From the NCBI RefSeq assembly GCF_001194135.2, contig NC_068997.1, forward strand, positions 55,393,411-55,457,410: a stretch of DNA of 64,000 nucleotides, given 5' to 3'. Every line of letters begins with the position of its first letter. The stretch's first letter is position 1. Of the stretch, positions 9,665 through 54,509 are shown in pieces. This DNA is from Octopus bimaculoides. Its lineage: Eukaryota. Both the position numbers and the translations under genes were made by a program. Under the pieces are notes generated by a model. It was not told where the DNA came from. It saw only the letters and a list, made by a program, of their open reading frames with translations, and ran no database searches.

Positions 9665-10022
9665 ATAAAAGAGGGTAAAGGACAAGGACCCTCCGTCGGT
9701 CATGAATGACTGTGGGATTACACCTAGAAAGTTACCCTCTGAGGCACAAGTCCAGCGAAGGTTGTTTATGGAAGACCAGCAGTCACCCATGCATACCAGC
9801 CTTCCCTCTCCACGCCACCAGTGTAATCTAACAGAAAGGCAAAGGGCTGATACAGCTCGGCACCAGTGACGTAGCAACTCGTATCTACAGGCTGAGTGAA
9901 CTGAAGCAAAATGAGATAAAGTGTCTTGTTCAAGAACACAATAAACAGCCCGGTCCATGGAATTGAACTCACTACCTCATTATTGTGAGCTCAATGCTCT
10001 AACCACTGAGCTATGTGCCTTC
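9665..10022 (-). mobile_element. tRNA-derived SINE, family C (CORE-like CTTGAGCAAGACAC motif on its sense strand)
   Basis: tgagtgaactgaagc...aaagtgtcttgttcaagaacac...ggaattgaactc...ctaaccactgagctatgtgcc. Confidence 0.85.
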
Positions 10023-10377: not shown

Positions 10378-10650
10378 GTCAGGTTAGAGAGGCAAGGTTG
10401 TTTATGGAAGACCAGTAGTCGCCCATGCATACCAGCCTCCCCTCTCCATGCCCACGATGTTATCCAAAGGAAAGGCAAAGGCTGATACAACTTGGCACCA
10501 GTGGTGTCTCATCTCATTTCTACAACTGAAGCAACATGAAATAAAGTGTCTTGCTTAAGGACACAACACACGGCCCAGTTCAGGAATTGAACTTACTATC
10601 TCCTGATCATGAGTCTGACACTCTAACCACTGAGCCATGTGCCTTCACCA
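10378..10650 (-). mobile_element. SINE family C
   Basis: Same body as 9665-10022: gttgtttatggaagaccag...cccatgcataccagcc...ctctaaccactgagccatgtgcc. Confidence 0.85.
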
Positions 10651-11965: not shown

Positions 11966-12892
11966 GTTGTAAGAGAGAGAGAGAGAGAGATACATATGTT
12001 TAAGATAAGGTAAGGTAAACTAAGTACTTACCGTTGAGGTGACTATGCTAAGACTGGAGTAAAATTTATTGTAAAGATCTGCAAGACTGGTTCTTCAAGT
12101 TACGTCCACCATCCAGCAGGAAAGGTGTAACTTGAAGTCCAGTTACCTTTAATTTTACTCTCTCTCTCTCATATATATAATGTATATGTATATAGTTGTT
12201 TAAAAGCTAAAAGAGAAAAGTTATTCTCCTGAGACATACACAACAGTGCTCAGCATATTTTGCACCTGTGCCTGACTAGACATGTTAAGAATATGTATTC
12301 TAATATTCATTCCTGATTTTGCTGTAAATGATGCAAATGACTGTCATTGTAGTGTGTCACAAAACGACCATCTTTAGTTCAATAGTCTTTGAGAAGGTGA
12401 ATAGTAAGCAAAACATTGATATGGCCTCTGAGGCAACTTGTGCCAGGTGTTTTCCTATTCCTGTGCTGTAGCTGATGTCTCTTGTTTCCATTTGTGTTTC
12501 AGTTACCACAAAGTCAGAACGCTGGCTGCCTGCTCTGTCATTGTGCGCTCTTTAGGGATTAAGAATATCATTTATATGAATTAAGATTGTTTTGTATGAG
12601 CTCATGTGAGTATGTGTATCAGAAAGACAGAGAGAGAGAGAGGGGGAGAGAAAGAGAAAGAGAGAGAGACAGACAATGTGTGTGTGTGTGTGTCTGTAGA
12701 TGCCTAATGAAACAGGATATGAACATTAGAATGCATTTGGTTTGCAAAGCAAATGTGGAAAAGATAAATGAATTAGGACTCTGAGCCCTCACACAAACCC
12801 CTAAGTTAGACTTCAAATGGGTTTGTAGATACATGGAGATTTTCTAAGCTGACATGAATTATTATCTCAGAAAACATTTCCTCCAATTATCT

Positions 12893-13283
12893 TTTATCTG
12901 TTGTTTGTTTTAGTCATTAGACTATGGCCATGCTGGGGCACCACCTTGAAGACTTTTAGTTGAATGGATTGACCCTAGCAATTATTTTTTTAAAGGCCTA
13001 GCACTTATTCGATTGGTTTCTTTTGCCAAACTGCAAAGTTATGGGGATGTAAACACACCAATACCTGTTGCCAAGTGGTGGTGGGAGACAAACACAGACA
13101 TAAAGACACACACACATATTTACATACAAAGGGCTTCTTTCAGTTTCCATCTATGAAATCCACTTACAAAGCTTTAGTTGGCCCAATGTTATAGAAGAAG
13201 ACACTTGCCCAAGCTGTCACACAGTGAGATTGAACACAGAACCATGTGGTTGGGAAACGAACTTCTTACCACACAGCCATGTC
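12893..13283 (-). mobile_element. SINE family A, full length
   Basis: Tail agtcattagactatggccatgctgggg through head cttcttaccacacagcc. Confidence 0.85.
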
Positions 13284-13351
13284 AATTGACAATTTATGCT
13301 CATAAACAAAGGTTAATCATAAAAATATTGCAATGCTAGTAGTTACTAAAC

Positions 13352-19500: not shown

Positions 19501-21279
19501 TGCAGCAGCAGACACTTATCTAGGTGCCATACAGTAGGAGTGAACCTGAAATCACTGATGCGAAGCAAACATCACCACCCAGACAGCCATGCCCCTCCAG
19601 ACGTATCAACATATTAATTAATCAGTTATTAAACAGTAAACTAATCACGTGTAAACAGTTGATAGAAGGAAAGAGAACAGTTTTAATATAAACAGTTTGA
19701 CTGGTGTAAGAACATAATCTTAACTGATATAAAGAATATATGGTAAATTTCCTGGTTTTAGCTTCACATTGAATCACTTGTCTAACTCAGATAAATACAA
19801 GGATATTAATTCACATAATACAGAGTTAGAGGATCTAAAAGCTTAGGATGTTGACAAATCTTATATATTTATTGATTTGTGGATTGCCGATAGCAAGTGA
19901 TCCGTGTATATATGTCATTCTGACTGAACCAAGCTGCCAGCTTTTATGAATGTATTTTGCTCTTTTGCTTTGCACAGGACAACATCTGTACTAGATTCTT
20001 GATGTACTTCATTTTGAATTTTACTTAGTTGCAGTGTAAGCGTGTGAGTGTATGCAGGAGGTGCAGGGGTGGAGCGAGTTACAATCATCTTATCTGTGTC
20101 ATAAGGGGAAACTATAATGTTACTTTGAAAAATCATTTAGATTAGATTTCCTATGATGACAAAAGAAGTAAAGAAAAGATATTCAAACTTAGACAACGAT
20201 TAGTTTTCCTCATTATTAGCATTATTCCTATTTTGTTTGTTTTTTAATATTTACGTAAATAACGATAAAACAGTAAGAATTTAACAAAATTTATTTGCCA
20301 AAGTGCATGGTAAATATCAAATTGCACTCGGTGGTTTCTTGGTCTGGTCAATAAATGTAGCAGACAATTATTGTGAGTTAGATTATATGGAAGGATTTCA
20401 TTATAACAATTATATGAACTGGCAGTAATAAATAATGTCTACTTAAAAAAAAAAAAACCAGTTCCATTGAAGTAAAGATAAACACAGCATATCGCTTTAT
20501 TATTATTATTATTATTTATCTATCTATTATGTGATCTGGTAAAAGATGAGAATTTTTTTTCTTTCTGACAAAAAACATCAAACTCAAGTTTTAAATTTTA
20601 CACAGAATATTACTTTCTCACATTTAATATAAATTTACATGGAAATCTAATAAAGAATTTGTTTTGATTTGTTTATTTTGAAACTGATTTTTTTTTTTTT
20701 GAAAACAAAATAAACGGAAATGTTTGGCTACAGAAAAACAAATAGAAAGCATTAATATTCTTTTCTCTTTTTACTTTTCTCAAACTTGTTGCTATTATTA
20801 TTATTATTATTAGTTGTATTGGTATTAGCATCAGTAGTAGTAGTGTTAGCAACAGCAGTAATGTTACTGTACATCTGAAAACTGTGTTTTTAGGTTTGTA
20901 GGTGTTACATTGATAGACGTATTATCAGCCAGTTACACCACCACCACCACCACTGGCCCTTGAGTCCCTTTAGTGGGGTACAGTTTAACGTAAACATTTA
21001 AACCAGATCTCTTGTCTGAGAATAACTTCTTCCCTTTCTCCACCAGTTGCAGAGACCCTCAAAATTTTCATAGGGTATGACCCTTTTACATTCACTGAAT
21101 CACTCCTTAAAAATGAAGTATTCATTAATAGCTGTGTTGAACAAATTTTGTTTTTATTGGAGATTTCAAACCCCTCTGGGTCAACAGTGCCTTTCAACTT
21201 CAATAAACTGAAGTACCAGTCAAGTACTGAGGTCAATGGTATCAAATAAACCCTTCCATAACAACTGTTCACCTTGTAC

Positions 21280-21479
21280 AGTTCTATATTTAAGAAATGA
21301 GGAATTATTTACATTTGATGGATATTTGTCCTCATCTTGTTTGTTCTTAACACAACGTTTTGGCTGATATACCCTCAAGCCTTCCTCATGCCCATGGGCA
21401 TATGGTGTAGTGGTTAAGAGCATGGGCTACTAACCCCAAGATTCCAAGTTCGATTCCAAGCAGTGACCTGAACAATAGC

Positions 21480-21511
<32 letters not shown>

Positions 21512-21653
21512 CAACATCGAAAAATACCTTAGGAATGAGAACCCAGGTTCGAAATTTTCCCAAGACACCAGAAGAAGGCTGGAGGATATATCAGCCAAAA
21601 CGTTGTGTTAACAACAAACAAGATGAGGACAAATATCCATCAAATGTAAATAA
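21280..21653 (+). mobile_element. tRNA-headed, hammerhead-bearing short retroelement with 5' inverted arm and 14-bp TSD
   Basis: TSD tgttcaccttgtac at 21266-21279 and 21654-21667; inverted arm ~21280-21389; tRNA-like head 21396-21468 (A box TGGTGTAGTGG, B box GTTCGATTCC); (AAT)n; degenerate HHR motif 21564-21609. Confidence 0.85.
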
Positions 21654-21699
21654 TGTTCACCTTGTACCTAAATTATTCATTAGCACAGTATTCTATAAA

Positions 21700-25240: not shown

Positions 25241-25606
25241 CCTTTATTTCAGTCATTAGACTGTAGCCATGCTGGGGCACCACTTTGAAGAATTTTTTAG
25301 ATGAAGGAATTGACTCCTACACTCAATTGTTTTTAAGATTGTACTTATCCTATTGGTCTCTTTTGCTGAACTGCTAAGTTATAGGGACATAAACATACCA
25401 ACACCAGTTGTCAAGTGGTGGTGGGGCACAAAAACACACACTCTCTCTCACACACACACACACATATGTATGATGGGCTTCTTTCAGTTTTCATCTACCA
25501 AATCTACTCACAAGGCTTTGGTTGGCCAAAAGACACTTGCCCAAGGTGTGACTGAACTCAGAACCATGTGGTTGGGAAGCAAACTTCTTACCACATGGCC
25601 ATGCCT
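25241..25606 (-). mobile_element. SINE family A, full length
   Basis: agtcattagactgtagccatgctgggg...gggcttctttcagttttc...cttcttaccacatggcc. Confidence 0.85.
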
Positions 25607-26809: not shown

Positions 26810-27949
26810 TAGCTAAAGTTGGTTTAATTAATAGAGTGTAATTGCTACTTCCTCATCAACCATGTTACACATCACTACATTTGGACCCTGAGTGCATGTT
26901 CTGCTGTTAATTATAGCAGTTGGTTACAGGTAATAATTACAATTAATGTTTATGTTTATGCAGTGCTTGCTGAACCTTCATTGAAGACTTCCTTTCTTGT
27001 ATGAGGATTAAGAAAACTATAACTGAACTGACTCTTAATGCATTAAGTCTTTGCCAGATGAACTGATTTAACCCTTTCCATAACCTGTCTGAGACTGCTT
27101 CTGGTTCTTGGATACAATACTTCCTGTTTTAAAGTGATCTGTATTAAAAATCTTCCATTAAAATATTTTAATTTAGGATTTAAATGCCAGCTTAATTATG
27201 ACAAAGTTTATTTTACTAAACTCTTCATTGTTTACAGAATCAACTGGAACAAAATAAGCCAATTCCAATAGAGATACGGCAACAAAGTTTAAGACTTTCA
27301 CTCTGGTTTCATAATTCTTCAGTGTATTCTTTCATTACACCTAAGTTGTCTCAAATCAGCTGCCTACAGTTGTATCAGTTCTTTAATTTTACTGTTAATA
27401 TTCCAATATACTTCTTATACATAACTTTCTTTTAGAAATCAAACATGAAGAAGATACGATTTGCTCAGGATAAGCAGACTCTAAGGATTCCTTTAGATGA
27501 TGCAAAACTTAAATAATTATATCTAAAGAAAACAAGCTGCCATGTATATAATATCTGTGCAATTATATTATCTTGTAAATATTTAATACATTCTACAACT
27601 ATTTCATTATTCAATCTAGTTTTATCTTGAAACATAGAATTTCAAGCAAATGATAGAAATATCTGTTTCAATTGATTTTCATATTGCTTGAAGGCTAAGT
27701 CTATAAACTGACATTTTAGAGTAGAATCACTTTCAGTCACAGACTCAAACTATTGGCTTCTGATTGGATTTATTTCAACAAAGTTGTACTATGTGAAAAC
27801 AGTTTTATTTTTCCATATGGTCAACTAATTTTCTCTCAGCTTTTCAAAGTTTTTCTCTTTCTTCTCATATTGTCATTTCTACTTCATTTGTCATTTCCTT
27901 CCTCCCAGCTGTGCATTTTTAGGTTATATTTTATATCTAGTAAGACACC

Positions 27950-28050
27950 ATCATCATCACCATCATCGTTTAACGTCTGTTTTCCATGCTGGCATGGGTT
28001 GGACAGTTTGACTGGAGCTGGTAAGGCCATGAGCCACACCAGGCTCCATT
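27950..28050 (-). repeat. E-type SINE tail
   Basis: catcatcatcaccatcatcgtttaacgtctgtttccatgctggcatggg. Confidence 0.7.
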
Positions 28051-28609: not shown

Positions 28610-28740
28610 TTCATCATCATCATCATCATCATCGTCGTTTAACATCTGCTTTCCATGCTAGCATGGGTTGGACGATTTGACTGAGGACTGGCGAACCAAA
28701 TGGCTGCACTGGCTCCAATCTTATCTGGCAGAGTTTCTAC
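28610..28740 (-). repeat. E-type SINE tail
   Basis: (cat)n cgtttaacatctgctttccatgctagcatgggttggacgatttgactgaggactggcgaacc...ctggcagagtttctac. Confidence 0.8.
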
Positions 28741-28915
28741 AACATCAAAAAATACCTTAGGAATGAGAACCCTGGTTCAAAATTTCCCCAAGACACCTGA
28801 TGAAGGCTGGAGGGTATATCAGCTGAAACATGTTAACAACAAACAAGATGACCATCAATATCCATCAAATGTAAATAACATATATAATTCCTCATCTCTT
28901 AAATATAGAACTGTA
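28741..28915 (+). mobile_element. 5'-truncated copy of the tRNA-headed HHR element, with complete 3' tail
   Basis: aacatc.aaaaataccttaggaatgagaacc...GACAC-CTGATGA-AGGCTG-GAGGGTATAT-CAGCT-GAAAC...cctcatctcttaaatatagaactgta. Confidence 0.8.
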
Positions 28916-34330: not shown

Positions 34331-36344
34331 AATGCTCATACCAAACTGTCATGTATAAATCTCATGTGATATAATAAAAAAAAAAATTCATCTTGGAGTA
34401 AAATAGATTTGTCAGACTGCAGATGTCGGTCTGTTGCAATCCTTGCTGAGTATCATCCTATCATCTGTCTCTGTCTCTCTCACTCTCTCAAATTGTAAAT
34501 ACTACTAAAAAAAGTGACTGAACTAATTGCCAACAGAGAAATAAAACATGATCAGGAGAAATACTATCACCAAGAAATACTGGAATCTATCCACAAATAA
34601 TTTTACCTATTCAGAGAAGATACATTCCTGGTAATTAAATGAGCGTGATGGTAGTTTGCTTGGAAAATAACAACTACCACTATAACTATTATATATATAA
34701 ATGTTTGCACATACACATATATATTCACACACACACGCAAAACTCTGTGTATGTGTGTGTTGGTGAGTGTGTAATAAGAAATTATAAAGAAAAAAATTGC
34801 AGATAAAAGCAAAAATGTGAATGCCCTGTGTGTGTAGTTATTAATGTAGATCTTTCTTCTGCTAATAAACATTGATGGTGGATTCCCTTTATCCAAACAT
34901 TGATTATCTGCAGTGCATGTAATTTAGAATATTGTTTGAGTAATTACATACATATTTATAATTAACTATGCATTTACCAATAGAATAACTTCCACAATTG
35001 GCAATATCTTTGTGCTCATTCAACTAATTACTTCAACATCAGTGAATTTAATTCAACAGTCACCTGCCATAAAGATCAATAGATGATTTTCTGAAGAGGA
35101 TATGGACACCAACCGCTATTACAGCCTATCTATATTCATTGATATGAATATGAAATTTGTTTTTAATAGGTTTTGTAAACTAACAAACAGTGTTCATGGT
35201 GTATGTTTTATATCCAGGTTGCTGCCTCGAATGCAACTAATCTGTCAACGTATCCATCTTGCATCAGCATTTTTCAAATAATTATTTCACAACTTGGTTG
35301 TAATTCTTAGTAGATGCTATTTAGTTCCTCTTGTATTGCTAAAACCCTTGAGAAATATTAATCTTATGTAGCAAAGATTATTATCAATAGACAAGCACAG
35401 ATATTAGTAAAAATACAAAATAGTGCCATCTATCAACAAGATAAAATGTCATGTCTTTTGTTTCAGTGTTAAAGTTCTTTTGTCTCTGATTTTTTTGTCT
35501 GAAACAAAAAATTATTTCTTCAGGGTACATCTTGAAATGCATGCTTAAAGATTTTATTAATCATTCTGGCATCATTAATGGCCCAAAGCTCTTAAAGAAT
35601 CAGAAAGCAGAGTGGACAATTCAAGTGCCTACAATGTCTGATTTAATTAGAATTGTTATTTTATATTGTTCATCAATAAATAGGTTAAACAGTTTAAACA
35701 GGAAAGGTGCAGGATCAATATTCATCAAAAAATCCATTCCCTTTAAGTGACTATTTATTAACCACAGGTATTAACAAAAATTACTCACACAACATGTAAG
35801 CAGACAAGTTGAAAATGTATAAACATATATGCACATTTAATTTCACCATGCAAATAGGCACCATGGTTTAACAAGACTCTCTCTCGCCCTCACACCCAGC
35901 TTTCTCTGCAGGTAATTAATGTTCATCGATAACAGATGTGATGATATACAGATAAGAAAACATGGTGACTATTATTCCTTGCGTTATTCCTAAGCAGTTG
36001 TATATCACTCTCCCCCTCTCCCCATCTCTTTCTCTCTGTAGAACAAATGAAGACTACACTTTCGATGAGAATGACCGGGCTAAAACTTGTTTGAGTTTTG
36101 GATCAGTTCATTCAGTAACGATTGATCTGTGGCTTAATCATAGATATGATTGGGGTTTACATCCACCATGGGGTACAAAAAAAGATGTGTTTATTAGACA
36201 ACTGTTAATTATAATGTGAAAGGGGAAGTAAGAAAACCGAAAGATGTAATCTTTGTCATCACTAAATCTTACAAAAACTAGGAATCAAAGAATACACATT
36301 TCTATAAACATGCTGGAGAACTAAAAACAAACAAAATGTAAATA

Positions 36345-36505
36345 TCATCATCATCATCATCAGTTCTACATCCTACTTCCATGCTGGCATGGGTTAGACA
36401 GTTTGATGAAATTAATGGGTCCAAAGACTGTCATGCTACAATGTGTGCTTCAGCACAGTTTCTACAGCTGGATACCATTCCTAATGCCAACCACTCTACA
36501 ATGTA
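36345..36505 (-). repeat. E-type SINE tail
   Basis: (cat)n...ttccatgctggcatggg...tttctacagctggataccattcctaatgccaaccactc. Confidence 0.7.
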
Positions 36506-38632: not shown

Positions 38633-38866
38633 GCATATATTTTTTTATATATATACATGGTTTTGACATTTAAGCAAACCATGTCAGAGCAAAATATTCT
38701 GCCTGTTTTATGTTCAAATTGGTCAGATCTGACTTCTCACACCTACCCTACAATGTCATACTAAACGTTATACACATATATACACATATATGTTATAATA
38801 TATCATATATATATGTATGTGTGTGTGTATAATATACATATCATATGCACATCATACATATATAAT

Positions 38867-39270
38867 CTTTTATTTTACTTGTTTCTGTCATTATACTGAG
38901 GCCATGCTAGGGCACTGCCTTGAAGAATTTTAGTCTAACGAATCGGTCCCAGTACTTATTATTTTGTTCATTTGTTTATTTTGAAGTCTGGTATTTATTC
39001 TATGAGGCTCTTTTGCTGATTTGCTAAGTTACGGGGATGTAAACACACCGACACCAGTTGTCAAGCAGTGGTGGGGAGCAGGCACAGACACAAAGACATG
39101 CTTAGGTCTAAAACAGGCTTCTTTCTGTTCCTTCCTAACAAACCCACCTTATAAGGCATTGGTCAGCCGAAGTCTACTATAGAAGACACTTGCCCAACGT
39201 GCCATATAGTGGGACTGAAGCTGGAACCATGTGGTTGAGGAGTAAACTTCTTACCCCACAGCCATACCTG
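38867..39270 (-). mobile_element. SINE family A, full length
   Basis: cttgtttctgtcatta..ggccatgctaggg...gaagacacttgccc...gggactgaagctggaaccatgtgg...cacagcc. Confidence 0.85.
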
Positions 39271-46190: not shown

Positions 46191-47721
46191 CAGTCAGTAA
46201 ATAAAAAATTAGCATTTAAACCTAAGTTTCCACGAATAGAAGAATCACCTTGGAATTCGCTAAACTCAACATGAGATGTTGATCAGTTTAAAAAAACTGA
46301 GCTGCAACTAAATATAAAAACAAGAACAGAGGACAGTTCCTGTAAAGTATTATGAATATGTAGAAATATATAAATTTGCCAATATTTAAAGAGAAAATAA
46401 TGTTCTTTGATCGATATTTAATTTTTCTGTTTGGCAATTTTCGTTTTGCAGAGAAAAAAAAAAAGGCAAAACAAAGTTTACCAAAGTTATTTTAGTTCTA
46501 TAAGAACAGTGTACATACTTGCTGAATAGAGAAATTGGACCTTAATACATTATGTGGGAATGAAAAAGAATCCAAGTTAAAAGGATTTAAGAGAGGAAGA
46601 AGGTGTTTCTACAATTTTTATTAACAGATTGTATACAATATTTAACATGAGTTGTTCAATTTCAATCATTTAATTTTCTTTTCAGTCAAATATTTATGCA
46701 GATATTGCGAGTTAGAAATAAAGAAAATAACAACAACATTATTTGCAGCTGTTGGCACTTGAACATTTGTAGCTGGACAAAGAAAACTTTCCTTATATTT
46801 TATTTACATTCTATAAGTTGTGGATTTTTAAGTATGCTTTTATTCCCCTCTCACTAAACATAACTGCACAGATTGTTTGACAAAATCAATTTCTAGTTTT
46901 GTTGTTCAGAAACATTTTTATTCTGACATTAATATTTCTTAGAATATGGCAGTTAGCATTAGAAGATTTTACTAAGCATATATGACAGAATTGATTCTGT
47001 TGAATACATTTACTTAAAGCTGACATTTAAACAAAATACATGCAGGAATTTCATACCAAGAATGCAACAATTATGTGTGAAGAGGTGCAGAGTATAGGCA
47101 ACAGGTTAAAAGCCAAACTCGCCTCAGTTATTTTTTTTTATTTTACTAAATTGAGGATTGAGGGAGCAGACTTGGTATGAGTAGCACTTACTGTTGAATT
47201 GTATGAAAACAAAAATCCATTAGCATCAACATACTAGTCATATTTAGTAGTTAAGGGGTGGTGGTTGTCTACTGATGATCGAAATTTAAAATAGAGAAGA
47301 GATATTAAACTGATTAAATTCTTCAAGCTGAAAGGAAGGTGTTTGTCAATGTTGTGTAGTGTGAGGTCCAGAGGCAGGAGGTGTTCTGGATTGCAAGATA
47401 ATGTGTCAGAGAAAAGTTGTGATGTTAGATGGTGGTTTACTTGCACTTAGAGGCCCTGCAAGGAAAGAGGTATGAAAGTGAAACTATGAAAAGCTACTAA
47501 ATGTGTTTAATATATGGGAGAAGGAGGGTCTCCCTAATGTGAACCCAACAGAGAGATCAACAATCTGAGTTGACAGCAGCATGATAGATAAATAGATAAA
47601 GCAATTAAGGATATGTCAAACGTTCTGACCCATTCCAATATGGAAAGTAGGAGTTGAATTATGATGATGATGATGATAATACACACACAAATATATGTAC
47701 AGTACACGACAAAACTATAAC

Positions 47722-47973
47722 TGCATTATTTACATTTTAACGCATTTTGTCCTCATCTTCTTTGTTAACACGTTTCAGCTGATATACCTTCCAGGTGTCT
47801 TGGGGAAATTTCAAACCTGGGTTCTCATTCTTAAGGTATTTTTCGATGTAATTATTATTATTATTATTCAGGTCACAGCCTGGAATTGAACTTGGAATCT
47901 TGGGGATAGTAGCCCGCGCTCTTAACCACTACACCATATGCCCATGGGCCTCATCTCTTAAATATAGAACTGG
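47722..47973 (-). mobile_element. Second TSD-flanked copy of the tRNA-headed HHR element
   Basis: TSD aaactataac at 47712-47721 and 47974-47983; reverse complement reads [ccagttctatatttaagagatgag]-GCCCATGGGC-atatggtgtagtggttaagagcgcggg...(AAT)n...gacacctg(deletion)gaaggtatatcagctgaaacg. Confidence 0.85.
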
Positions 47974-49848
47974 AAACTATAACCACTTGTAACTTGAGTA
48001 TTGATGCAATATAGTTTATGAATAAACATGTAGATGGAGTAATTTCCATATGTTCAATACACATACATTCAATGTTGCGGTGAAATTGGGCTCCGCATTT
48101 AAACCACAAGAGCTTCAGCAGTTTGGATTATTTCTAGTTATTGGATCCGAAATATGAAATTGAATAACTATTATAGTTTAATGGAGCAGCTACAGATAGA
48201 CATGTAATTAATTGCAGTATTATAAAGAGTCACTTCCAATGAATGATCTGTAACAGAACCAGATATATTTCCAAATATGCTGATTAAGATTCTAATGCAA
48301 GAATATATTGTGTTGCTGTTGTTACATTGAATTTTGTTAGGTTTCAGGTGGCAAAAGAAATAATTACCAATGCATAATGAAACATATCTAAAAATCATTA
48401 TAGATTACTATTGTTAGCATTGACTTCTTTGTTATGTTTTAAGAATTCGCTAAGAATTGGACAGCTTAATGTTCAGTAATATTTTTGGCCTCTTACCAAA
48501 TTATCCAATTGTACTCTAAGCGATCTGTTAAATGATAGAACATTGCATTGTTCCAGTATTCTATAAAATAATATGAATTAAATTATCAATTAATCTCATT
48601 TCCTGTCAGTAGTTAAATATTTCTTTATGGCCATAGTTACTATTACACAAGCAATGGTGTAAAAATACACTTGTGCACTGTTGCTGACAAAGCTTAACAA
48701 TGAGCTTTGAGAGTAAACTGCCTTATTCATTCAACCCAAAAATAACGTTAGCGAACACCTCAGTTTTTCTTATCACAAATAATTAATCCCATTCTGCTAA
48801 TTTCTGAGATCCAGTTGTTTTTTTATGACTTTGTATCAATAAGAATTGTAAAAGGAAATCTTTGCAACAGCAGTAATTGTTAGGGATATCAGCACTGAAT
48901 ATATTTACTGAAATTCTACAAGTGATCCTGTAATTTACATCTACCTTGACAACATCATACATCAGCTGTTATCTACTTGAGATTTGTGTTGTTACACCAA
49001 TCTTTATTGGGCTTATTTATGTGTCTTATTTCTCTACACTGGTTCTTGGTCAGTCTCCTTATTTCTGTCCGCTGATTAATGTTGCCACCAAATTGTATGG
49101 TGAGTGGAACATCTTAAGGAAATACTTAATTAGCTTACTCTTAATACAACATTGGATTTTGATTTTGATATTACCACTACCCATAAAAGTGAGGGATATC
49201 AGCGTACACATAACCTGAGGGCTGATGACAGCAGAAGGTAATTGTGAAATTAAACAACAGAAGTAACAAAACAGAATTAGATCACACTGCAGCAGTTTTG
49301 TAGGAAACGGAGAATGAAAGCATAAAGACTAATGCAAAACCTCAAGAGAGAAAGAAAGAGAAATAAGAAGAATCATCTTTAAACTAGGAGCAAGAAATAA
49401 GCATAAGTGATGGAGAGAGTGAGTTTTAAAAGAAGGAGGAACAAAATTTGATCTTTAAACTAGCAACAAGGATTATTACGAATGGTAACACCAGGAGAAG
49501 CATCATCACTTTTATTTGTTCTCAGCAAAATCTTCAATGCTGTGTTACTTAGACCGTTATATGAAACTATTGATGTTGGACTGCATGGATTTCAGTAAGT
49601 TGGTCATGGAGTGAACAGAGCTTTATTCTGTTTGACATTATTGAACAGTGAGTTGAATGCCAGCAACAATTTTCAATCAATTTCATTGTCTTTAAGTGTG
49701 TTTGACAATGTGTATGGTAAACCAATATGGAACACTGCCAGGATTTACAGCATCCCACAGCAGTACATCAATATTTTTCAAAACATTAATGTCAGCTATT
49801 TTACAAAGATACACAGTGATACCACTAAACATTCCCTCATAGTGACTG

Positions 49849-51569: not shown

Positions 51570-51947
51570 TCTTTTATTCTTTTATTTGTTTGTCATTTGA
51601 CTGCAGCCATGCTGGAGCACTGCCTTCAGATGAGCAAACCAACCCCAAGACTTATTCTGTGTAAGCCTAGTACTTATTCTATCAATTACTTTTGCTGAAC
51701 CACTAAGTTACAGGGACATAAGCACACCAGTATTAGTTGTCAAGTGATGTTGGGGGAACAAACACGCACACACACACACACACACGACGGGTTTCTTTCA
51801 GTTTTTGTCTACCAAATCCACTCACAAGGCTTTGGCCAGCCCGAAGCTATAGTAGAAGAAACTTGCCCAAGCTGCCACTCAGCAGGACTGAACCCGGAAC
51901 CATGTAGTTGGTAAGCAAGCTTCTTACTACACAACCACTCCTGTACT
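51570..51947 (-). mobile_element. SINE family A, full length
   Basis: gtcatttgactgcagccatgctggagc...gacgggtttctttcag...gggactgaacccggaaccatg. Confidence 0.9.
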
Positions 51948-54000: not shown

Positions 54001-54345
54001 GTTGTACTTGGGGATGGTCATATTGCCAGTTTAGCCAATAAAAACACACGCACTGTATATTTGGTGTTAATTTGCTTCAGCTTTATATTACATTAATCTT
54101 AATCTTATTTCGGCCAGAGTTCTTTCGTCACACTTCTGTGACCTCATCAGTGGTCCTTTGTTTCCTTCTTTCTTATGTGTGTCTCACCTTGCTAACTATC
54201 AGCCATTTTGTATTTTGTATTCCTATTGTATGTGTCTACGCATGCGTGTCCTTCAATGTGTCTGTGTCTTTTGTAAGTGCATGTGTGTATGGGGAGTGTC
54301 TGTATCACCTATATTCTGTTAATACGATTTCACATCAAAAATCTT
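54001..54345 (-). mobile_element. Penelope-like pseudo-LTR fragment carrying a hammerhead
   Basis: Contains the HHR at 54112-54156; bracketed by an inverted duplication of flanking DNA. PLE assignment is inferred from the minimal HHR architecture. Confidence 0.55.
54112..54156 (-). ncRNA. Minimal type I hammerhead ribozyme motif, catalytic core intact
   Basis: Reverse complement GGACCA-CUGAUGA-G-GUCAC-AGAAGU-GUGAC-GAAAG-AA-CUC-UGGCC: stem I CCA/UGG, 5-bp stem II, 2-bp stem III, CUC cleavage triplet. Confidence 0.8.
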
Positions 54346-54499: not shown

Positions 54500-54509
54500 N
54501 NNNNNNNNN
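54500..54509. other. Assembly gap (10 N)
   Basis: Run of N. Confidence 1.

Follow-up and report, generated by a model that had tools for sequence, protein, structure and literature searches.

Short interspersed nuclear elements (SINEs) are textbook parasites of long interspersed nuclear elements (LINEs), and the classifications in use contain no class of SINEs partnered with Penelope-like elements (PLEs). A repeat in the genome of Octopus bimaculoides raises the question of which machinery moved it. The repeat lies at 21280-21653 of a 64-kb stretch (hereafter the window; coordinates given without a contig name are positions within it), which is draft DNA of ~31% G+C with N gaps and many microsatellites. 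Our preferred answer, to which we assign a probability of about two in three, is that 21280-21653 represents an old insertion, since inactivated, of a non-autonomous octopod retroposon that joined a tRNA head to a PLE-type hammerhead module and was mobilised by PLEs. In other words, we take it to be a SINE that probably relies on Penelope elements and not on a LINE.

The basic unit is ~265-290 nt in length and consists of a tRNA-derived head, an (AAT)n linker and a ~175-nt module. Judged by its sequence, the module contains a hammerhead of the minimal type I, with a helix I of 5 bp, an additional A following A9 and ACGU instead of helix III; a conserved 3' hairpin comes next. The hammerhead-to-tail part (~110-130 nt) is, by alignment, homologous to a 129-nt unit that forms tandem and inverted arrays elsewhere, and this 129-nt unit is the pseudo-long terminal repeat (pseudo-LTR)/retrozyme type of sequence associated with PLEs. 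The first-pass annotation of the window had spoken of a borrowed PLE pseudo-LTR, which was imprecise: what was borrowed is the ~110-130-nt unit, tandemly repeatable in other lineages.

Insertion structure in the window and in related loci

Self-BLAST of the window revealed two further copies beside the present one (copy 1), i.e., three copies per 64 kb, and an nhmmer scan of the window detected no copies beyond these three. We also read the DNA of ten related contigs (~65 kb of related loci), including octopod-like contigs from Logan, contigs L003-L005 of ENA ERZ21867824, which represent a second organism (organism 2) without the abundant octopus SINE described below, and L010 from Tara Oceans, which represents a third lineage.

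In published descriptions, PLE insertions are 5'-truncated and often partially tandem; an inverted 5'-truncated copy frequently precedes them, the inverted junction contains palindromes, a 30-40-bp tail often occurs at one end only, and the target site duplications (TSDs) of the A. vaga examples measure 8-10 bp (PMC3846280, PMC8557442, PMC8969392). All of these insertion traits were matched, except for the tandem arrangement in the window copies, which are monomers; tandem (pseudo-LTR) arrangements were present in L003, L004 and L005. An inverted 5'-truncated copy abuts the 5' end in copy 1 (84+24 nt), copy 2 (23 nt), L001, L003, L004, L006 and L010. The inverted junction is palindromic in the window (ATGCCCATGGGCAT), in L004 (CCATGG) and in L003 (CCGG within helix II), and TSD length varies, being 14 bp in copy 1, 10 bp in copy 2 and ~10-12 bp in the relatives.

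Among the related loci, L006 mirrors copy 1, in that its TSD of ~10 bp encloses a tailed inverted arm, what is left of a head, an A-rich stretch, the body, a decayed hammerhead and a tail-less direct copy, and L001 is a headless pair of an inverted and a direct arm (both contigs are octopod-like and from Logan). In L003, a 12-bp TSD flanks an inverted arm joined within helix II to 2.7 tandem 129-nt units. L004 (TSD ~11 bp) contains 2.9 inverted tandem units, the CCATGG junction, a tRNA-like head, body and hammerhead; L005 (TSD ~10 bp) contains head, body and 1.9 tandem units. Inverted pairs with CUGAUGA-A...GAAA(C/U)GUU were found in L010. Identity between the octopus module and units of the L003-L005/L010 type was 80-84% over 68 nt. 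A paralogous empty site for the L004 insertion is carried by L003. The repeat split by the L004 element reads GAATACGAA..TTTTTAAG.AGATCTATTTG..CCC...AGGTACTACCAC, with flanks at ~9690-9712 and ~10380-10420, and its unsplit paralogue, the empty site, is located at L003 10570-10620.

The tail is 24-25 nt long and, in octopus, homologous to the final ~25 nt of the 129-nt tandem unit. It was present only on the left in copies 1, 2 and L006, only on the right in copy 3, only on the inverted side in L004 and only on the direct side in L003; L001 and the first L010 pair have it at both outer ends. RNAalifold, applied to nine 3' regions from three lineages, predicted an 8-bp stem, AGAUGAGG/CCUCAUCU, whose 3' strand lies within the tail and which includes one compensatory pair (GC in five, AU in three). 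The tail-less ends of copies 1, 2, L004 and L006 all fall within the loop of this hairpin: copies 1 and 2 share one endpoint, that of L006 is the same in the aligned unit, and that of L004 is analogous.

These structures suggest the following mechanism. Pol III (RNA polymerase III) would start ~13 nt before the A box (predicted transcript 5' end GCCCAUGGGC) and read through into the module. The reverse transcriptase (RT)/GIY-YIG endonuclease of a PLE would recognise the 3' module in trans, probably via the hairpin, and two staggered nicks 10-14 bp apart would give rise to the TSD that is observed. Both nicks would then prime cDNA synthesis on RNA 3' ends, yielding a full-length right copy and a short inverted left copy joined at the palindromic 5' end. 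One outer end would be the true unit end with its tail and the other would lie 27-40 nt upstream, in the hairpin loop, leaving a one-sided tail. A tailed end paired with an end 27-40 nt upstream was seen in copies 1, 2, L003, L004 and L006.

The features of copy 1 and the positions of copies 2 and 3 are shown in the table. The 14-bp TSD previously noted for copy 1 was confirmed, and the palindrome, A/B-box head, (AAT)n, body and hammerhead-like segment follow each other in the order and at the places given by the first-pass annotation. An inverted arm of ~110 nt derived from the element's own 3' end had also been described; this held for 84 nt, which form the arms 21304-21387/21571-21654 with 95% complementarity and a spacing of 183 nt in the repeat search, and did not hold for the outer 24 nt (21280-21303), which have no counterpart on the right side of copy 1. 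The outer piece instead has its match in copy 3 at the 3' end (28888-28912) and in copy 2 at the 5' end (47949-47971); its homologues in other contigs are the end of the 129-nt tandem unit (L003-L005) and the arm ends (L010). An antisense hammerhead remnant is located inside or at the left arm (21349-21394), and the core of the junction palindrome, GCCCATGGGC, at 21390-21399. The 7 nt 5' of the left TSD also resemble the element end, forming a 21-nt direct repeat with 86% identity, which suggests microhomology-assisted priming.

Table. Features of copy 1 and locations of copies 2 and 3 in the window
Feature	Position	Strand	Remarks
Left TSD of copy 1, TGTTCACCTTGTAC	21266-21279		Identical 14-mer at 21654-21667
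Inverted tail, AGTTCTATATTTAAGAAATGAGGA	21280-21303	-	Reverse complement of the last ~25 nt of the unit
Inverted 5'-truncated arm, antisense hammerhead-to-3' region	21304-21387	-	Pairs with 21571-21654
Palindromic junction ATGCCCATGGGCAT between inverted arm and unit 5' end	21388-21401		Read directly
tRNA-like head	21390-21472	+	A box 21403-21413 and B box 21447-21457; A/B pattern scan
Internal microsatellite (AAT)n(AAC)n	21473-21513	+	Joins head to module
Body (5' part of module)	21514-21563	+	Aligned in copies 1-3, L001, L006, L008 and L009
Minimal type I hammerhead relic (predicted)	21564-21609	+	GACAC-CAGAAGA-A-GGCUG-loop-CAGCC-AAAACGUU-GUGUU
3' region, tail-less end ...AAATGTAAATAA	21610-21653	+	Carries 5' strand AGATGAGGA of the conserved 3' hairpin
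Right TSD of copy 1, TGTTCACCTTGTAC	21654-21667		Perfect 14-bp match to left TSD
Copy 2	47722-47971	-	23-nt inverted tail, CCCATGGGC, head, (AAT)6, body, hammerhead, tail-less end
Copy 3	28739-28912	+	Headless module, starts at microsatellite/body boundary; tail kept, 28888-28912

In copy 2, the 23-nt tail is the sole inverted piece at the 5' end, the unit starts with CCCATGGGCAT as in copy 1, and the 10-bp TSD, GTTATAGTTT, is found at 47974-47983 and 47712-47721; 13 nt of the hammerhead box and helix II are deleted. Copy 3 has an intact core (CUGAUGA-A-GGCUG...CAGCU-GAAAC), a 3-nt deletion that removes the cleavage site and helix I (GAAAC-AUGUU), and no detectable TSD of at least 6 nt. Relative to copy 1, the (AAT)n tract is shorter in copy 2 and expanded in L006. 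This linker and the start of copy 3 at the linker/module boundary, a single data point, suggest that the element may have originated when a PLE unit inserted into a microsatellite downstream of a tRNA-like gene.

A separate repeat, (CAT)n followed by ...TTTCCATGCTRGCATGGGTTGGAC..., occurs at 28615-28738, 27946-28014, 36344-36406 and ~47600-47690. Copy 3 sits in or beside one copy of this repeat and copy 2 adjoins another. A composite of copy 3 and its (CAT)n neighbour was considered and dropped, as copy 3 is merely inserted alongside.

Relatives were also visible as spurious open reading frames (ORFs). A profile of the spurious ORF of the element, used with full HMMER against 1.84 billion representative proteins, gave 108 matches. 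Three long ones (P0018, P0035 and P0053) were rejected as false positives, and the rest are short spurious ORFs from related repeats, which divide into octopus-type sequences, sequences with the recurrent peptide MANGIRTGDPRGFNKGRSSKFREGSRVRQTPEEGWRTYRPKRCGNNNKDEDNSPKTLNDKNHQASSQKFRQ, and intermediates between these two groups. Among 90 translated units, an intact CUGANGA is possible in 73% and an intact ...CC-GAAACGUUG in 41%; at least six proteins read through the inverted junction. Word-indexed protein searches are nearly blind to this family: a peptide from the element found only two proteins, both from O. bimaculoides (A0A0L8FV75 and a dystrobrevin-beta isoform X1 model), matches that by themselves assign the window to octopus or to a very near relative, and a chimeric six-frame query returned one irrelevant caskin-like protein. 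Exact DNA pattern scans of metagenome, genome and viral contigs gave no matches.

The dystrobrevin beta isoform X1 model (P0002; GCA_001194135.2, 97.8-Mb chromosome) contains the SINE match in its first part. Here, an internally deleted SINE copy provides the start codon and the first ~33 residues (MPMGIWHSG-EGWRVYQPKCCVNNKQDEDKYPSK), which is either an exonisation or an annotation artefact.

Hammerhead module and tRNA-like head

In the minimal hammerheads of PLEs, helix I is short, a nucleotide separates A9 from 10.1, the G10.1-C11.1 pair is conserved and 15.2-16.2 is palindromic; their monomer activity is low, and they often occur as opposite-strand pairs 100-700 bp apart (PMC4209133). The extra A between A9 and 10.1 was found in both arms of copy 1, in copy 3 and in nearly all of 16 aligned sequences. 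The 10.1-11.1 pair is GC in 9/16 and GU in 2/16, other states being mostly CpG decay. A helix III loop is absent, and the palindromic 15.2-16.2 (ACGU) is contained in GAAACGUU followed by GUGUU. Helix I has 5 bp in octopus (GUGUU with GACAC) and 3 bp in organism 2. Intact minimal hammerheads are present at L004 10131-10175 and 10260-10304 (AAACAC-CUGAAGA-A-GGCCG-loop-CGGCC-GAAACGUU-GUGG). These two sites and the reconstructed ancestor combine the core boxes CUGANGA/GAAA with U16.1 and H17, and no single window copy does so.

Within the window, CUGAUGA is unbroken in copy 3 alone and GUUGUGUU in copy 1 alone. The mutated core of copy 1 (CAGAAGA, AAAAC) is as the first-pass annotation had described it: the hammerhead reads CAGAAGA...AAAACGUUGUGUU, with the lesions U4>A and G12>A, the latter falling on a CpG. 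The inverted arm of the same copy reads AUGAGGA...AAAACGUUGUGUU, and the two arms combined imply that the CUGANGA box was intact at the time of insertion. Several of the lesions in the window are CpG transitions (C11.1-G12 to UG or CA; C15.2-G16.2 to CA), and CpG sites account for most of the window mutations. The consensus of three copies proposed earlier is a composite that is intact in no copy, and a search with it, allowing three mismatches, found no match; as a reconstruction, it is backed by the 16 homologous sequences from three lineages. In these aligned regions, the hammerhead helices are paired in 75.6% of cells in register vs 18-49% with the partner slid. Helix II contains one clear and one minor compensatory pair; at 10.4-11.4, UA occurs in eight, CG in six and UG in two sequences and an unpaired state in none (U-A in octopods, C-G in organism 2).

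None of the window copies passed the full minimal-hammerhead descriptor, for which 0.0 chance matches are expected. A partial descriptor (CUGANGA and GAAA, with 0-1 nt and then a helix II of 5 bp or more between them) had two window matches vs 0.03 expected, one being copy 3 and the other an unrelated site. Rfam detected no hammerhead in the whole window at gathering thresholds or in copies 1 and 3 at E<=10. As the Rfam 15 hammerhead models also miss the intact L004 hammerheads (E<=1), the null result on the window is uninformative, and routine annotation of noncoding RNAs will overlook this class. The hammerhead was probably inherited from the PLE-type unit. To be active, it would need to form a dimer or to occur in tandem copies, and in transcripts of the single-copy SINE it is likely a passenger or a structural element. 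Another candidate function of the module, coding for a PLE N-terminus, was dropped, since 20% of random sequences are likewise fully open over 174 nt and a match to a long protein was lacking.

The unrelated partial-descriptor match, at 54105-54158 on the minus strand, reads CCA-CUGAUGA-G-GUCAC-AGAAGU-GUGAC-GAAA-G-AA-C-U-C|UGGCC. This hammerhead-like motif has an extra nucleotide after A9, G10.1-C11.1, a 2-bp helix III and a weak helix I, and was not seen by Rfam. It is bracketed by a 107-nt inverted repeat with 95% complementarity (53821-53927/54378-54484), the right arm of which ends ~15 nt from a 10-N assembly gap (54500-54509). The inverted repeat may be a real foldback, a PLE-like structure or an assembly artefact.

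The head contains an A box, TGGTGTAGTGG (21403-21413), and a B box, AGTTCGATTCC (21447-21457), with one consensus mismatch each and 33 nt between them. The combined A/B-box pattern had four window matches vs 0.0 expected (300 Markov windows), and all four correspond to heads of tRNA-type SINEs, two in the present family and two in another family (at 10013 and 10637). The 5' end of the unit lies 13 nt before the A box and is identical in copies 1 and 2. The default ARAGORN search gave no tRNA match, and Rfam at E<=10 reported no tRNA in copies 1 and 3; with relaxed (90%) thresholds, ARAGORN suggested a weak Ser(ACT)-like fold in copy 2 only. The silence of both programs implies a promoter-bearing tRNA relic rather than a foldable tRNA. 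The tRNA-like head of the first-pass annotation is supported in its correctly spaced boxes and not by tRNA calls at default settings. From its sequence, we infer that the head is tRNA-derived, that only the Pol III A and B boxes are kept, and that Pol III transcribed it. A second B-box-like motif, GGTTCGAAATT, is located in the body (21546-21556, within CCCAGGTTCGAAATTTCCCC) and is present in copies 2 and 3 as well, which hints that the module itself may hold an older tRNA-like relic.

Weighing the readings

Several observations weigh against a PLE-mobilised SINE. All three window copies are predicted to be catalytically dead. Pfam detected no RT or GIY-YIG domain among 150 window ORFs, and L003-L005 contain no autonomous PLE ORF, with APE-type LINE RTs being the only RTs there. 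An autonomous PLE sharing the tail, a check that had been suggested earlier, was likewise not found: neither the window nor the ~65 kb of related loci yielded one with the module. A tblastn search of the window and the loci with an improvised PLE consensus found nothing, a weak negative given that the query had no known PLE as positive control. The head does not fold as a tRNA, nor is there clear homology between the heads of the octopus family and those of organism 2. In a column shuffle of the hammerhead alignment, the observed covariation score was reached in 53 of 500 runs, which is not significant because variation is small and independent lineages are few. Taken with the in-register pairing and the compensatory change at 10.4-11.4, the covariation support for the helices is real but thin. 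Finally, a lone active hammerhead in a Pol III transcript would sever the 3' recognition region, which argues against a cleavage role. On the other side stand the insertion architecture and the minimal-hammerhead traits, both of which match published descriptions of PLEs.

The same evidence could be read in terms of an ordinary LINE-dependent tRNA SINE, with a module derived from a LINE 3' untranslated region, a hammerhead likeness that is coincidental or irrelevant, and an arm generated by twin priming or rearrangement. LINEs make up 12.9% of the O. vulgaris genome, with RTE, CR1, Dong-R4 and L1-Tx1 recently active (PMC13282606). APE-type LINE RTs occur a few kb from related units in L003 and L004, and TSDs of 10-14 bp would also suit such LINEs. 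However, a poly(A) or LINE-type 3' microsatellite is absent, no similarity was seen between the unit and the neighbouring LINE 3' end, and the module belongs to a hammerhead family with intact members and compensatory changes. During twin priming of L1 on a single RNA, the region upstream of the direct segment is inverted, not repeated; both arms of copy 1 repeat the same 84 nt. The one-sided tail and palindromic junction were moreover seen repeatedly, in independent insertions and in more than one lineage, and we consider a LINE-dependent origin distinctly improbable. A structure arising at the DNA level (a foldback, a MITE, i.e., miniature inverted-repeat transposable element, or an assembly artefact) without any retroposon would fit the inverted repeats and the N gaps of the draft assembly, but is effectively refuted: no inverted-repeat relationship exists between the outer termini, copies are 5'-truncated with TSDs of variable length (10, 14 and ~10-12 bp), the same structure appears in independent assemblies and read sets (Logan, ENA HiFi and Tara), and an empty-site paralogue exists in L003.

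A different possibility accepts the PLE and questions the SINE: the element could be a PLE-dependent retrozyme or solo pseudo-LTR in which the tRNA piece is a dead, transduced passenger, as PLEs are known to transduce, and transcription came from read-through or a pseudo-LTR promoter instead of the head. PLE pseudo-LTRs can indeed mobilise, in trans, foreign sequence lying between them (PMC3846280), copy 3, L001, L003 and L010 are headless, the head lacks a tRNA fold, and heads vary by lineage. Headless copies are nevertheless expected from 5' truncation. The A and B boxes are the best-preserved part of the head and correctly spaced in copies 1 and 2, and the unit in both begins where Pol III would be expected to start, 13 nt upstream of the A box. 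Head and module are also linked in two lineages, L004 and L005 being headed and at least 16 peptides sharing the body that in these two loci separates head from hammerhead. We regard a passenger head as unlikely and retain a Pol III-transcribed SINE mobilised by PLEs as the preferred explanation.

Precedents and other repeats

The first-pass annotation recognised no described family resembling this element, a statement that was too strong. Two aspects are already known: a tRNA head combined with a hammerhead, and hammerhead repeats as PLE derivatives. The former is represented by the schistosome elements Smα and Sjα, reportedly described by Ferbeyre (1998) and Laha (2000). These are tRNA-derived, Pol III-transcribed, hammerhead-bearing SINE-like retroposons (PMC2770079, PMC6765202). 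Like the octopus element, they are short and non-autonomous, a type I hammerhead comes after a Pol III promoter of tRNA origin, and they have a high copy number and occur both dispersed and in repeats (PMC2770079, PMC6765202, PMC8490949). According to the published descriptions, Smα differs in being tRNA-Gln-derived, tandem-dependent and from another phylum; its hammerhead is of the classical schistosome type and cleaves multimeric transcripts, whereas the octopus motif is of the PLE-type minimal form without a helix III loop. No report of the insertion signature of inverted arm, one-sided tail and palindrome was found for Smα.

The latter aspect is represented by animal non-LTR retrozymes, which have been proposed to be non-autonomous PLE derivatives (PMC7229834, PMC7761336, bioRxiv 10.64898/2026.07.22.740005). 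Retrozymes resemble the octopus element in being hammerhead non-coding units of ~130-400 nt with larger TSDs than those of LTR elements, and the likeness lies in the relatives of the window copies, namely the tandem 129-mers with intact hammerheads in L003-L005. Retrozymes are defined by tandem arrangement and circular RNA and usually have classical type I hammerheads, whereas the window copies are single units; a Pol III/tRNA head such as that of the window copies is not mentioned in the retrozyme papers.

By published traits rather than sequence identity, PLE pseudo-LTRs share with the element the minimal hammerhead, the inverted truncated copy, the palindromic junction, an optional 30-40-bp tail and variable TSDs (PMC4209133, PMC3846280, PMC8557442), as well as trans-mobilisation of foreign sequence and an affinity for microsatellites. 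Unlike a PLE, the octopus element has its own Pol III-type head and no RT/GIY-YIG ORF in it or nearby. LINE-partnered tRNA SINEs (Ceph-SINE, OK/OR) are similar with respect to the A/B-box head, a length of less than 300 bp, TSDs, 5' truncation and dispersal, but the present element has a hammerhead unit instead of a LINE tail as its 3' part, a PLE-type inverted arm and tail, and no poly(A) or LINE-type repeat. The comparison with the old octopus SINEs OK, OR1 and OR2 covers their description.

In the literature, to which this comparison was confined (Repbase, Dfam and SINEBase being outside its scope), we found no description of a tRNA-headed SINE with a PLE insertion signature, of a cephalopod member of this kind or of the conserved 3' hairpin. 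The SINE-PLE partnership is a testable and fairly novel reading. The family connects work on schistosome hammerhead SINEs with that on animal retrozymes and on PLE pseudo-LTRs, three separate literatures. A compact substrate of ~270 nt with all the odd Penelope marks and a 3' hairpin could also make the PLE integration mechanism experimentally tractable. In O. vulgaris, 30 recently active Penelope families and 893 unclassified SINE families have been reported (PMC13282606), and the present family may help to classify some of these hundreds of octopus families. More tentatively, there could be a multi-lineage class of true SINEs with a PLE partner, in which a tRNA head was fused, possibly repeatedly, to a ~130-nt PLE hammerhead unit and the tail-spanning hairpin would serve as the RT recognition site. 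If so, the position of the hairpin would explain the long-puzzling one-sided tail of PLEs, part of the unclassified octopus SINE families would be PLE-dependent, and the standard SINE classification would be short of one class.

The window contains other repeats. An abundant ~400-bp repeat has at least ten copies (e.g., 12881-13300, 25243-25603, 38862-39265 and 51570-51937) and opens, on the reverse strand, with a tRNA-like head, TGGCTGTGTGGTAAG...GGTTCAGTCCC. It is probably the major octopus SINE. A word-indexed protein search with an ORF from an abundant window repeat found nothing, and an exonised copy of the ~400-bp repeat was present within a caskin-like protein (P0003). A third tRNA-derived SINE family is represented by two copies on the minus strand (~10013 and ~10637), which read GGCACATGGCTCAGTGGTTAGAG...GTTCAATTCC and have an unrelated body and no hammerhead.

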